Shown in pieces: positions 219 to 25,194 of a DNA stretch of 64,000 nucleotides (position 1 is its first letter; the number at the start of each line of letters is the position of its first letter). The position numbers and the translations under genes were made by a program. The stretch comes from Octopus sinensis (taxonomy: Eukaryota). The notes under the pieces are model-generated. The model made no database searches and was not told where the DNA came from. It saw only the letters and a program-made list of their open reading frames with translations. Location: NCBI RefSeq assembly GCF_006345805.1, contig NC_043023.1:9362001-9426000 (forward strand), written 5' to 3'.

Positions 219-290
219 GAATCTAGGGAATAACAAAATCTCGACTATTGAGCAAGGAACATTCAGGAATCTTTCCAACATAAAGTATTT
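219..290 (+). CDS. LRR exon, diverged type: (L)NLGNNKISTIEQGTFRNLSNIKY(L)
   Basis: ttacag|g...tt|gtaagt; 72 nt; phase 2/2; matches LxLxxNxIxxIxxxxFxxLxxL. Confidence 0.9.
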
Positions 291-1214
291 GTAAGTTGAA
301 TCTATTTTGCCGATACTCTTCACTTGACGGTATATTTCTAAATATTTGGTGTTTTCCTATCTTTTTTCTTCGTGAACTTGCCCTTCTCTAACTCAGATTT
401 TCTCCCTTTATGAGTCTGCAAATGTGCATGTGAAAGTGTTTAGAAATACGAAAATTTGGTGTTTACATCAGTGATTCGTATTGTGTGTGTGTATAAATTT
501 CTGTATGTGGTCATTTGGAGAGCATAAGTCCTCAGCCGTTTGAACTACTTCTCCCAACTATATTACCAAACAATATTAAATTAGCAGTGAAACTCGAAGC
601 AATCCAATGAAGCTACATATAATAAATCGCTTCAAATCAACGTATTAGCTACTGGAAAAGACTGAAAGAGTGAAAGATATGCAGTGATATAAATCTGGAA
701 ATTCATGGAAGGCCTTGTACCAAACCTTGGCATTGAAAGTTACACAAACAGCAGAACAGGGCGCCACATTTTGCAAGTTGGATCAGTCTTGCTGATATTA
801 TTTTCTTGACTGTATTTTTCTGCACATTTGATGTCTTCCCATGTTTCTTTCTGAACTTCAATTTGCCATTTTCTAACTCGCCTTCATTCAATATACGTGT
901 AATGCAACGGGTGTTTGAAAATGTATGTTAATATGAGTGTTTGGATTCTACATCACTTTGTGTATAATTGTGTGTATGTGCATCTGTATTTTTTTCGTCT
1001 GAAATAAGTGAATAATTATATACTCGTTTACCGTTTCCTCTTGGGTAAGATATGTCAAGCGAACCAGAAAGCATTGCTTTCTTCTTCTAAAGAAAATTTG
1101 TTCGCCTGAAAGTTCACGAGGTCTAAGCACGGCTTTCAGGAATGTTGATTGGAAGATGCTTTCAGAAGTTTATTTATATTGTATGTGCTGAAGAGATTGG
1201 TTTAACCACCCGCA

Positions 1215-1490
1215 AATAATAATAATAATAATAATAATAATAATAATAATAATATAATAATAATAATAATAATAATAATAAATAATAATAATAATAATAA
1301 TAATAATAATAATATAATAATAATAATATAATAATAATAATAATGATGATGATAATAATAATAATAATAATAATAATAATAATAATAATAATAATAATAA
1401 TAATAATGATGATGATAATAATAATAATAATAATAATAATAATAATAATAATAATAATAATAATAATAATAATAATAGTAATAATAATAT
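1215..1490. repeat. (AAT)n microsatellite
   Basis: Direct; source of the poly-I/L/Y pseudo-ORFs. Confidence 0.97.
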
Positions 1491-2137
1491 ACAGTACCAG
1501 GCAGTGGCTCTCATGGCTTCTGATCTTAACTGACTGGAAGTGTTATCATGTACATTGTTTTGTCTTGGTATAAAAGATGGGCTACAGCAAATATTCTGCT
1601 CAATACCACAGATTTGCTTGTCAGTTGTTTGACCATAACCAGTTGAGCATGTCCCTTAGTGGCTGACGATATGTGCATCTCTGATCACGCACAGAAGTAG
1701 TGGGGGAGCATCATAGCCATGTGTTGAAAGGAATTATTTGGGGTTTGGATAATTCACCTTTGGAAACATAGGTGGTTCGTTCAACATCCTTAAACAATCC
1801 TTATTCAGGGACCTTTTGAGCAGGATGGGTTACTCGACCAGAAGAAAATTCTAACTGGGCCTCACAGGCAAGGACATGCACTGTTTGTCTTGATATGAGA
1901 TCACAATGTCGCGCACATATGGTTGTGATGCATGTGTCTTGTGTATCTTGATCAGACGGGTAGTAATGATAGGTATTCTGGGCTTCGTATATTTTACCCC
2001 AGTGTCACTTTGATGGCATGCACTGCTCCCACACTCAATAATAATAATAATAATAATAATAATAATAATAGTAATTGTAATAATAATAATAATAATAATA
2101 ATAATAATAATAATAATAATAATAATAATAATAATAA
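1491..2137 (+). mobile_element. Interspersed repeat whose 3' end runs into an (AAT)n tail
   Basis: The tail ccccagtg.cactttgatggcatgcactgctc.cacact.aataataa recurs at ~26380-26470, again followed by (AAT)n. Confidence 0.5.
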
Positions 2138-2920
2138 TTTCACAACAAATTGCGGTTTTGAAACTTGGCTGATAGGTGGGAAAAAATCTCTGCATAGAAG
2201 ATATATGGCTCGTAGCAAACAAATTACTGTAGACCAGGAGGTCTGCTATGAGTATGTAGAGAACTCAGGTGTAAAGCGAAGACTTTCCCATGGCTGATAA
2301 GTTTAGAGATTATTGGCTGGTAACTCTCAACCCAATGTGAGGAAAAATGGTGTAGACCCAAAGAGCCGATGCCGTAAGGAGGGGATTGAAACAGTGGACC
2401 ACCTAATCACGGGGCGTAAGGTTTTAGAACCTGTAGAGGATAAATCAAGGCATGACAGAATTGGTCAATATCTACAATGGATATAATGTCGACATTTTAT
2501 AATCAAATCTGTCGATAAATGGTATAAACTCCTCATTCAAGCTGTAACTGATTGATGTTACAATTCTTTGGGACTTTCCAGTATGTACACACCGGACCAT
2601 CAAAACTAAAAGACCAAAACAGTAAAGTCTGTTTATTGATTGACGTGAGCCTTCTGTGTGATCATTATATCTCAGCAAAGGAATTCGATAAGCTCAGAAA
2701 ATATAACGATTTGCTAATGGAAATGGAAAAGAAGTGGCATATCAAGCCGGTTATAATACCACTGATTGCAGGATCACCTGGAATGGTCAAAAAAGAAACT
2801 CTAAATTATTTGAGAACCATCCCTGGCTGGCTTCTCTTTCATGCAGGAAGTGAAAAAGATCGTTTTAACTGCTACATCACACATACGGAAACGAGCATTG
2901 ACCCTTTGGATTTTCCTTGA
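2138..2920 (+). mobile_element. Degenerate 3' part of an REL-endonuclease non-LTR retrotransposon (R4/Dong-like)
   Basis: Zinc-knuckle remnant ETVDHLITG...SRHDRIGQYL and REL remnant CLLIDVS...KEFDKLRKYNDL...W...IIPLIAG; frameshifted. Confidence 0.8.
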
Positions 2921-22983: not shown

Positions 22984-24090
22984 TTGGAATCCGTGGAAAA
23001 GTTCTAAACTGGATTAAGTATTTCCTGGCGAATAGAATACAACATGTTGTAATTGATGGAGTCCACTCAAACCTAGCAAAAGTCACCAGCAGTGGCCCCC
23101 AGGGGACTCTCTTGGGTCCGCTACTCTTCATAATTTACATAAACTACCTTTCCAGTGTTGTACATTACTGCAAAGTGAAAATATTTGCTGATGACACTAA
23201 GCTCCAGCAAATCGTCAATGAAGAGGCAGACCGAACTCAACTCCAATCTGATCTATATGCTGTGAGTCAATGGGCAGACAGAAACAAATTGCAACTGAAC
23301 GAGAGAAAATATGAGCTGATGCATTTTGGAAGAAATTCTTCACTAAAACAGCCATACTCTCTTCCTTCAGGGGAACCGCTCACAGCCTCTAACAATATCT
23401 GAGACCTGGGTGTAATTGTTGATGACGATCTCAGTTGGAGTGCACACATCAACAAGAAGGTCGATATAGCTCGTAGGATGAGTTCCTGGATCTTAAGAAC
23501 TTTCCGGTCCAGAGAACAAGGTGTCATCATACCACTTTTCTCTTCCTTCGTACGGCCACACCTCGAATACTGCTGCCCACTGTGGTCTCCCCATACAAGA
23601 CAAAACATCTCGAGGATTGAATCACCCCAGAAGGCATTCACTAAACGAATTGAAAGTATGACTCCTCTCGATTATTGGGACCGCCTTAAAGCCTTGAAAC
23701 TCTACTCTCACCAGCGTCGCCGTGAGCGGTACATCATTTGTACGATGTGGAGAATCTACCGCCAAATTTGCCCAAACGACCTGAGCATTACTTTCAAGGT
23801 TCATCCAAGAATGGGACCACGGGCCATACGTCCCCTGCCCAATTCAAGATCACAGCATACATGTACACTGCCCTATTTAACATTGTCCCGGAAGAGATCA
23901 AAGAGGAAAAGGATCCCATCAACTTTAAACGGAGTCTGGATAGATTCCTTCAAGGAATACCAGATAAGCCACCCATAATTGGATACAACTCACCCAACAA
24001 AAACTCACTACTTGAATTAACAAAACTTGACTTAAACAGGATTCAAATAATCCTATCAGGCGGTGCTATTAAGTTAGACATGGCCTGGAC
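22984..24090 (+). mobile_element. 5'-truncated CR1-like LINE (reverse transcriptase C-terminal half), inactivated
   Basis: PQGTLLGPLLFIIYIN, KIFADDTKL, VRPHLEYCCPLWSP, ...QRRRER; stop at ~23400 and a frameshift near 23870. Confidence 0.92.
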
Positions 24091-24169
24091 CAATTTTTTG
24101 ATATACTGGCCATTGATAAAAAAATTTTTTCCGATAAAAATATTATCCTACATTAGATATATATATATA

Positions 24170-24650
24170 CATGAGGTACCTAAAAGTAACCGAAATTATC
24201 TCTGTTGGGCAAGCCAGTTGTAGTTTAGGCTTCCTCTGCTAGAAGCCACTATCAGACATCAGTATGCCGACCGGCATTGTCATTTAGAGTCGTACTGCCA
24301 CGTGATGTATCGTTGTTTTGCAGTGTTTCTCCCTTATTTATTGATTTTTGCGATGGCTGAAACGAGGGAACAGCGTGCTCCCAGGAATTTTCTGATTTCT
24401 GCTGGGGAAAACGGCGGCCGAAACTATTGTCATATTTGACACAACTGACAAGGACGTTACCAGGAGCAAAGCACAAGTTTATAAGTTGTTTCCACACTTC
24501 AAGAATGGTCACTTGTCGCTTGAACAACAACTTCGTTCAGGGCGACCAATGACTTCCCGAAAGAATGAAAACATCACAAAAGTTCATGAACTCATCTTGG
24601 AGGACCGTCATCGAACAATTGAGAAACTTGTTGATACCACTGCTATGTGT
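24170..24650 (+). mobile_element. Mariner transposon 5' remnant (end plus transposase HTH region)
   Basis: From ATG 24353: EQRA...GKTAAETIV...QVYKLF.HFKNGHLSLEQQLRSGRPMTS...ITKVHELILEDRHRTIEKL. Confidence 0.8.
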
Positions 24651-25125
24651 CATAGTGCTCCTGCCGACGGATTGTTTTGTGCGAGGAATTGCAATTGAAA
24701 AGAGTTGCAGTGAGAGACAAACAGGGAGACACAGGGAGACACAGATAGAGAGAGAAAGACAGTGTCACACAGAAACATAGAAGAAGACACACTGTGTGTG
24801 TGTGTCTGTGTGTGTGTATGCGTTTTCTTTCACCCCATCAGCACATTGATGGGGTGAGCGAAACACAAAAGTGTGTGACACAGAGAGAGATTGAGAGAGA
24901 GAGACAGAGAGAAAAAGAGAGAGAAAATAGCACAGACAGACAGACACAGAGAGACAAAGACAGTGTGCGTGTGTGTGTGCGTGTGTGTGTGTGCACACAC
25001 ATACTCACATACTGTCTCTAAACGGATACCCTGTATTTGCGAAAAAGAAATTTAGAAAGGATTTTACAGTATAAAACATTGTTTTTTGACTTTTACGTAT
25101 TTTAACTTATCTTTGATTCTTTCAG

Positions 25126-25194
25126 AAAGTTGAGCTACAACCGTTTACAAAAATTTGATGGCGCTTTCTCATACATTTCCAGCATAAGTGAGAT
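25126..25194 (+). CDS. Last internal LRR exon: KLSYNRLQKFDGAFSYISSISE(I)
   Basis: tttcag|a...at|gtatgt; 69 nt; phase 2/2; xLxxNxLxxF pattern. Confidence 0.8.

Follow-up and report, generated by a model that had tools for sequence, protein, structure and literature searches.

The 64,000-nucleotide stretch of Octopus sinensis DNA analysed here (the window; GCA_006345805.1, CM016885.1:9,362,001-9,426,000) contains, at positions 219-25194 of its + strand, an array of ten short exons that each encode one leucine-rich repeat (LRR). This array is very probably the N-terminal LRR ectodomain of an O. sinensis adhesion G-protein coupled receptor (GPCR), and appears to be tandemly expanded, maintained and diversifying. 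The gene of which it forms the N-terminal part was modelled by mapping octopus relatives onto the window and by inspecting splice sites; it comprises 26 exons with consistent phases in the window and extends beyond both of its ends. Locus L003 is 100% identical to window positions 35835-64000.

The LRR exons were searched for by a scan for AG-N-GT windows with an open frame in phase 2/2 and a fit to an LRR pattern, a looser version of which was needed for the shortest exon. The nine 72-nucleotide (nt) exons and the one 69-nt exon announced by the original prediction were recovered on the + strand, with one LRR each and all in phase 2/2, and the spliced peptide of 238 amino acids (aa) matches Pfam LRR_8 (E=6e-107). 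The same scan found no LRR exon among 463 candidate windows on the - strand. The array is composed, in this order, of the following exons: a unique first exon (exon 1, 219-290; 72 nt, phase 2/2; NLGNNKISTIEQGTFRNLSNIKY), which begins with G; a type A exon (exon 2, 4215-4286; RLYGNKISKIERGLFENLTRLIT), located in the A block (3654-5611); two type B exons (exon 3, 5921-5992, which ends in GT and gives Val; exon 4, 8100-8171); the second type A exon (exon 5, 13187-13258); four more type B exons (exon 6, 15083-15154, the most divergent B copy; exon 7, 19079-19150; exon 8, 20392-20463; exon 9, 21650-21721); and a conserved last LRR exon before the cap (exon 10, 25126-25194; 69 nt, phase 2/2), which is 98% identical to its copy at the paralogous locus L001. 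The window thus holds one unique first exon, two exons of type A, six of type B (exons 2 to 9 being 72 nt long) and one conserved last LRR.

The boundaries of these exons are uniform. The 3' ends of all nine 72-nt exons are TT or GT and the first base is A in all nine LRR exons after exon 1, as had been claimed, so that the internal junction codons of the 72-nt exons can only be TTA (Leu) or GTA (Val). The additional claim that a single Leu/Val codon is split 2/1 throughout holds for the nine 72-nt exons but not for the 69-nt exon, whose last bases AT form an Ile codon with the next exon. It had also been proposed that any subset of exons could be skipped in frame through TTA or GTA junctions and without a stop; enumeration bears this out, 512/512 exon subsets being stop-free when each is joined to either of two downstream acceptors. 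The acceptors of the LRR exons consist of a pyrimidine-rich tract and CAG, and the donors are GTAAG in 9/10 exons and GTATGT in the 69-nt exon.

Downstream of the array, the gene model encodes the remainder of an adhesion GPCR up to the 3' end of the window, all on the + strand. In brief, it includes: an LRRCT cap (exon 11, 27524-27687; 164 nt, phase 2 to 1), which carries an in-frame TAA as assembled; a module with 12 cysteines (exons 12-13, 30356-30447 and 30829-31012), which ends in CCSDNLCN; a linker, delimited like the other exons from mapped relatives and splice sites (exons 14-16, 35285-35391, 37831-37883 and 39473-39630); a cysteine-containing, HRM-like region (exons 17-18, 44933-45044 and 45786-45907; …CSPFTGVWQEPDMSQC…); a GAIN domain (exons 19-23, 47505-47724, 48103-48274, 51084-51230, 55784-55918 and 56548-56688), which ends in the GPS motif CSCNHLTSFAILM; and the first part of the seven-transmembrane (7TM) domain (exons 24-26, 58210-58331, 61045-61168 and 63583-63727), which we read as about TM1-TM3. 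The signal peptide and the LRRNT exon lie upstream of the window and the rest of the 7TM domain lies beyond its 3' end. Pfam recognises LRR_8, GPS (E=1.2e-14, residues 800-841) and 7tm_2 (E=1.1e-15, profile positions 3-121 of 250) in the gene product. Among PDB structures, the GAIN and 7TM part matches adhesion GPCRs without exception, with ADGRG6 the closest (E=7e-37, query residues 84-480) and ADGRG2 next, and no ADGRA chain among the matches; query residues 14-353, which include the HRM-like region, align with the ADGRG6 extracellular-region chain 6v55_A. The GPS motif CSCNHLTSFAILM shows HL/T at the expected cleavage site, a cleavage that is predicted from sequence. The features of an adhesion GPCR (class B2) are therefore found together: a secretin-like 7TM domain, a GAIN domain with a GPS directly before TM1, and a long modular N-terminus, whose extracellular part holds at least 10 LRRs, the LRRCT, the cysteine-rich module and the HRM-like region. 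An identity as an LGR or relaxin receptor, suggested by the 72-nt LRR exons, is ruled out by the downstream GAIN/GPS and secretin-type 7TM exons.

The closest database proteins belong to an octopus adhesion-GPCR family (P0145, 100%; P0135, 98%; P0239), and the combination of LRRs with GAIN, GPS or 7TM is found in each of the paralogue proteins P0121, P0156, P0181 and P0183. An octopus-specific expansion of adhesion GPCRs, named 'group 3', was described as tandemly co-localised and as expressed in the axial nerve cord, suckers and skin (Ritschard 2019, PMC6408891, in its accessible text), LRRs being reported there for only 5/22 of its sequences. The same accessible text contains no description of one-LRR-per-exon arrays, of their tandem duplication, of an LU-like module or of LRR-unit isoform ladders. 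The family described there resembles the present gene in its species group, its tandem co-localisation, its GPS, its adhesion-type 7TM and the presence of LRRs in some members, and the gene is, as judged from its sequence, a member of this published expansion that RefSeq holds as a fragment. NCBI names the family 'adhesion G-protein coupled receptor G6-like', which reflects the HormR/GAIN/7TM part only. No O. vulgaris orthologue of this exact gene was identified, and the clusters P0145, P0135 and P0143 contain O. sinensis proteins only.

The 12 cysteines of the module between the LRRCT and the linker are conserved across the family. The only PDB match of its family profile is LYPD1 (6zss), which aligns end to end, weakly at E=0.11; no Pfam match was found for the module, and its AlphaFold model has a predicted local distance difference test (pLDDT) score of about 30. 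Ly6/uPAR (LU) domains are characterised by a length of about 80 aa, 8-12 cysteines, a C-terminal CCxxxxCN and a three-finger fold. The module is a probable Ly6/uPAR-like domain, and we know of no other adhesion GPCR ectodomain that carries an LU or three-finger domain.

The array bears the marks of tandem duplication. The A block at 3654-5611 is repeated at 12641-14581 with 95% identity, introns included, in a comparison of the window with itself, and the B blocks, of about 1.3 kb each, are mutually 86-93% identical, also with their introns; overall, the exon-plus-intron blocks are 85-95% identical. Copying a symmetric exon in tandem along with its introns automatically yields uniform phase, boundary bases and splice signals, which are therefore a by-product of duplication and do not point to a dedicated mechanism. 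The same one-LRR-per-exon, same-phase layout recurs at the paralogous loci L001, L004 and L005. The paralogous locus L001/L002, represented by two unplaced contigs, is collinear with the window at 88-96% identity; at L001, four B blocks form a separate run, and the exon of one of them has a 1-nt deletion (a pseudo-exon). In a tree of the intron alignment the blocks cluster mostly by locus, which indicates that each array was expanded or homogenised independently. LRR number ranges from 2 to about 11 among family members and array composition differs between the window and L001, its closest paralogous locus, so the earlier suggestion that receptors differ in LRR length through copy number is upheld among paralogues.

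Two observations concern the relations between these loci. L001 and L002 (VCDQ01005335.1 and VCDQ01010816.1, about 45 kb each) carry the same gene model, P0034, at near-identical coordinates, and probably represent a single paralogous locus, as haplotigs or redundant contigs. Furthermore, the window exon at 5921-5992 is identical to L001 20985-21056 at 72/72 positions with flanking introns that are 7.7% different, and the identity of the neighbouring paralogues P0135 and P0239 to the window is mosaic, with values of 56-98% for individual exons; both are suggestive of gene conversion within the cluster.

The repeats also appear to be under selection. The tests were made on nine intact B-type exons, those of the window and of L001 being taken together (9/10 B copies are intact). 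Over their 72 columns these exons have accumulated at least 34 changes, where the rate of the introns would predict 21.5 (p=0.008), and the changes are distributed over the codon positions as 10/11/13, without a third-position excess. At least 23 amino-acid changes are involved, of which 22 are at surface positions and 1, a conservative L/V exchange, is at the eight fold-determining positions (binomial p=0.001). The hot-spots of change are repeat positions 1, 3, 6, 22 and 23, which are the x residues of LxxLxLxxNxI and lie on the concave face. Synonymous variants, in contrast, are evenly spread (4 structural, 5 non-structural). Since the changes avoid structural positions, neutral decay of these copies was rejected, and the pattern of the B exons is that of a maintained LRR fold with a putative binding surface that diversifies. 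The LRRs and LRRCT of the nearest intact paralogue, P0034, are predicted as a confident solenoid with a cap (pLDDT 80-97).

A scenario for the origin of the array can be proposed from these data. The ancestral gene would already have had one LRR per 72-nt, phase-2/2 exon, and unequal crossing-over between introns would repeatedly have duplicated blocks of about 1.3, 2.2 and 9 kb, so that the LRR solenoid would have grown to 10 repeats or more. Because whole symmetric exons are copied with their splice sites, the frame is maintained when any unit is gained, lost or skipped. Selection would then keep the fold-determining residues and let those of the concave face diverge, so that the binding surface displayed ahead of a conserved signalling unit (LRRCT, LU-like module, HRM-like region, GAIN/GPS and 7TM) might differ from repeat to repeat and from one paralogue, with its own repeat number, to the next. 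All ten LRR exons would normally be included in the mRNA, and the receptor presumably binds its ligands through the concave face. By analogy with its paralogues, in which it is annotated, alternative use of LRR exons may also occur in this gene.

This last point could be taken much further. The array may be a splicing-based generator of diversity, in which LRR exons are combinatorially included or skipped to give, in principle, up to 2^9 receptors; we consider this possible, though somewhat more doubtful than not. It is favoured by the fact that all 512 subsets are in frame and stop-free, which is at the same time an automatic consequence of duplication. It is also favoured by three paralogous genes, in two species, whose annotated isoforms differ by exact steps of 24 aa, that is, by whole LRR units. 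In O. vulgaris, L004 (OX597827.1) carries a tandem set of four 72-nt exons built in the same way, and its transcripts CAI9732351-56 use exons 565+2652+3737, 1598+2652+3737, 1598+3737, or 1598 alone; isoforms were added to this annotation by PASA from Iso-Seq and RNA-seq data (PMC10700109). In O. sinensis, at least 12 exons of 72 nt, in which two types alternate, stand in tandem at L005 (VCDQ01004985.1), for which NCBI lists 13 isoforms (XP_036355612-23), of 409, 385 (four isoforms), 361 (five) and 337 aa (three). For a second O. sinensis gene (XP_036369232-38), the annotated isoforms measure 525, 501 and 477 aa, and what sets them apart is the number of complete LRR units near the N-terminal end of the array. 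In addition, the L001 model P0034 leaves out two intact LRR exons.

These isoforms support alternative LRR-exon use in the family. The ladders, however, come from paralogues, the array of the window is present in no database protein, and the ten exons of the window have strong consensus splice signals, typical of constitutive exons. Moreover, 8/13 of the L005 isoforms are clean whole-exon combinations, and the other five need a mid-exon junction that leaves a copy whose donor is defective (at about 11.1 kb) and enters another exon at the corresponding point. Such junctions in repeat-shared sequence are a known sign of cross-mapping or alignment ambiguity, and where exons are nearly identical, the placement of short spliced alignments is inherently uncertain; part of the ladder may thus be artefactual. 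The copy concerned, at about 11135-11206 of L005, is an LRR exon with an altered 3' end and donor that is used in these five NCBI isoforms, and its mid-exon junctions may represent either cryptic splicing at homologous GT/AG sites or a cross-mapping artefact of paralogue reads. Combinatorial LRR-exon use is plausible for the family, where we give it a little over one chance in three as a functional mechanism, and is a candidate only for the gene in the window. No paper was found in the searchable literature that discusses LRR-exon isoform ladders across the family.

Several observations weigh against the reading of the array as the maintained ectodomain of an adhesion GPCR. The whole spliced coding sequence has a single in-frame stop, the TAA in the LRRCT exon at 27524-27687, the 25 other exons being clean, and the gene could be broken by this codon. 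The RefSeq models of the locus (45835-63732) are fragmentary: P0145, a protein of 208 aa, covers only exons 18-21 and ends in 'VTQI', for which no contiguous coding sequence follows exon 21, and P0135 looks mosaic, with exons about 96-100% identical to the window and a GPS exon that is only 66% identical. The LRR array of this locus was found in no protein, annotated or transcript-derived, of a database of 5.8 billion sequences (including Logan), and the 5' end of the gene falls outside the window. As regards selection, the excess of exon over intron change is not significant in the window alone (p=0.16), and the pooled ratio of nonsynonymous to synonymous variation (pN/pS) of 0.55 has few sites underlying it.

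It could be argued that the LRR array and its cap are relics of a pseudogenised 5' half, that is, of a decaying or non-functional duplicate. Compared with L001, the LRRCT exon has lost single nucleotides at three separate A/T homopolymers (AA to A, TT to T and AAA to AA), which creates its TAA; only the 208-aa fragment is annotated by RefSeq; the changes of the B exons, at or above the intron rate, lack a third-position excess; and a 1-nt-deleted pseudo-exon is present in the paralogous array of L001. We nevertheless consider this explanation improbable. Indeed, the ten LRR exons and the 15 exons after the LRRCT have open frames, canonical GT-AG sites and consistent phases, and the amino-acid changes shun the eight structural positions (1/23, p=0.001), which the synonymous variants do not. 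The three deletions are all in this one exon, which adjoins a low-complexity tract of 23% GC, and the reading frame downstream of the LRRCT is kept because they sum to -3. Homopolymer contractions clustered in this way fit a failure of long-read polishing, and this O. sinensis assembly is presumably based on long reads; a local assembly or polishing error is more likely than a real lesion. Finally, the LRRCT, the LU-like module and the linker up to exon 15 (exons 11-15, 27524-37883) add up to 600 nt and, like the LRR exons, exon 16 takes phase 2, so that an LRR exon joined directly to exon 16 stays in frame and skipping of exons 11-15 would bypass the lesion. A junction of an LRR directly to the exon-16 homologue is present in the O. 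bimaculoides protein P0087.

An assembly artefact, in which collapsed or expanded haplotypes or mis-joined paralogues were placed in tandem, is very improbable: the family is highly repetitive, L001 and L002 are near-duplicate unplaced contigs and P0135 is mosaic-looking, but the blocks differ by 5-15% with their introns included, which we judge far above the allelic level, the order of the copies is broken by unique sequence and transposon insertions, and the same tandem architecture has independent counterparts at L001 and L005 and, in the assembly of O. vulgaris, at L004, so that the stitching of haplotypes, raised in the original prediction as a refutation, does not account for blocks that are only 85-95% identical and recur at other loci and in other assemblies.

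The maintained, tandemly expanded LRR ectodomain can be compared with several known systems. Strict modularity of LRR exons is established in NLRs, and the LRR exons of NLRP3 are alternatively spliced (Hoss et al. 2019, PMC6642158); for Slit, LRR exon modularity and alternative splicing were proposed (Little et al. 2002, as cited in PMC6642158). The statement of the original prediction that one-LRR-per-exon layouts are common agrees with this general modularity in LRR genes (PMC6642158). Like the octopus array, Slit- and NLR-type genes have one LRR per short symmetric exon, which can be gained, lost or skipped in frame; unlike them, the octopus units are very recent duplicates (85-95% identical, introns included) and stand on an adhesion GPCR. 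The octopus paralogues also show multi-step isoform ladders, unlike the single exon skip of other LRR genes. LGR and glycoprotein-hormone receptors likewise have LRR exons of roughly 72 nt in the same phase.

Among adhesion GPCRs, ADGRA2 and ADGRA3 (GPR124 and GPR125) share the order LRR, LRRCT, HRM-like region, GAIN/GPS and 7TM with the octopus gene. They carry about four LRRs and an Ig domain, whereas the octopus gene has at least 10 LRRs, no Pfam Ig domain and an LU-like module in the Ig position. Octopus relatives have precomputed matches to Pfam PF26588 (ADGRA3-type GAIN), the only pointer to ADGRA. Membership of the ADGRA subfamily was rejected on the lack of an Ig domain, on the LU-like module in its place and on the best structures being those of ADGRG6 and ADGRG2. 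The ectodomain of ADGRG6 (GPR126) is composed of CUB, PTX, SEA, HormR and GAIN domains. This architecture was rejected too, no CUB or pentraxin domain being found by Pfam, and the likeness to ADGRG6 is limited to the HormR/GAIN/7TM part.

With Dscam1, the clustered protocadherins and the variable lymphocyte receptors (VLRs), only the concept is shared, namely many ectodomain variants from modular units. The exclusive choice of Dscam1 was rejected, the paralogue isoforms using zero to several variable exons and not one of N. In a crude k-mer test, docking/selector complementarity was at control level (7 versus 4 control 11-mers matching the repeated introns), and a general inverted-repeat search for docking/selector pairs was swamped by TA microsatellites. 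On the available evidence, the Dscam analogy thus fails because exon number varies instead of being one of N and because complementarity does not exceed the control. The clustered protocadherins resemble the octopus family in their tandem array and nervous-system expression (PMC6408891, in its accessible text). Their layout of variable first exons and shared constant exons was considered on account of the near-identical C-terminal parts of O. vulgaris paralogues, and was rejected; these parts differ at several residues and therefore belong to separate genes that share no constant exons. Assembly of the lamprey VLR type was likewise rejected, and the analogy fails with it: in the one genome assembly analysed, all units point the same way, have canonical AG and GT boundaries and belong to one contiguous germline gene with many exons, and no sign of a somatic joining of cassettes is seen. 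The variable-receptor system of the original prediction is accordingly supported in part, by the modular, frame-neutral exons, by the varied LRR number among paralogues and, at the level of the family, by the isoform ladders, and is unsupported in a VLR-like or Dscam-like form; the immune role envisaged for the receptor is speculation.

At the locus itself, the data outline a concrete mechanism, in which symmetric LRR exons are duplicated in tandem and their putative ligand-facing residues diversify on an octopus-specific adhesion GPCR. Several recognition families (protocadherins, GPCRs) are expanded in cephalopods, alongside a large nervous system and chemotactile arms. It is conceivable, though on present evidence unlikely, that diversity arises at two levels, with germline unequal crossing-over and selection on the concave face on the one hand, and transcript-level combinations of N-terminal LRR exons, with many ectodomain isoforms from each gene, on the other. 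If so, the family could serve, in the axial nerve cord, suckers and skin, as a recognition code that would be Dscam- or protocadherin-like in purpose and built from LRR exons on a GPCR; this ten-exon locus would be among the larger members, and each of dozens of tandem paralogues would have its own LRR number and surface. The 24-aa ladders, if confirmed, would add a layer of splicing to receptor diversity in the family. As RefSeq holds only a fragment of the gene, automated annotation probably under-reports the LRR ectodomains of the family, and such under-annotation may explain why only 5/22 members were scored as LRR-bearing in 2019.

Furthermore, several repeats and transposon remnants are present in the introns of the gene. 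The intron that separates LRR exons 9 and 10 contains a reverse-transcriptase fragment of a retroelement (22812-23402, +; Pfam RVT_1, E=8e-10), which may reach as far as 23978; the neighbouring open reading frame (ORF; 23478-23978) has no Pfam match. An intron of the GAIN region contains a fragment of a DDE-type transposase (52430-52897, -), whose match to Pfam DDE_3 (E=3e-5) is below the curated cut-off. In the intron after LRR exon 6, two inverted repeats of 120 nt (16112-16231 and 17262-17381), 98% complementary and 1030 nt apart, are probably the terminal inverted repeats of a small DNA transposon or miniature inverted-repeat transposable element. A dispersed repeat of roughly 400 bp, which starts with AGGAGTGGCTGTGTGGTAAG…, is present in five intronic copies that are 83-88% identical (27961-28377, 42418-42791, 45281-45709 and 53951-54351 on the + strand; 46819-47214 on the - strand). 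It is possibly an element of the short interspersed nuclear element type; ARAGORN found no tRNA-like gene in the window. Very long microsatellites of AT-rich triplets and dinucleotides, with a GC content of about 23%, occupy 26382-27500 and 62125-63400, and many (TA)n and (CA)n tracts occur elsewhere, for example at 38013-39127; these microsatellites give rise to spurious ORFs, up to 421 aa long, that read as poly-Ile, poly-Asn or poly-Tyr.

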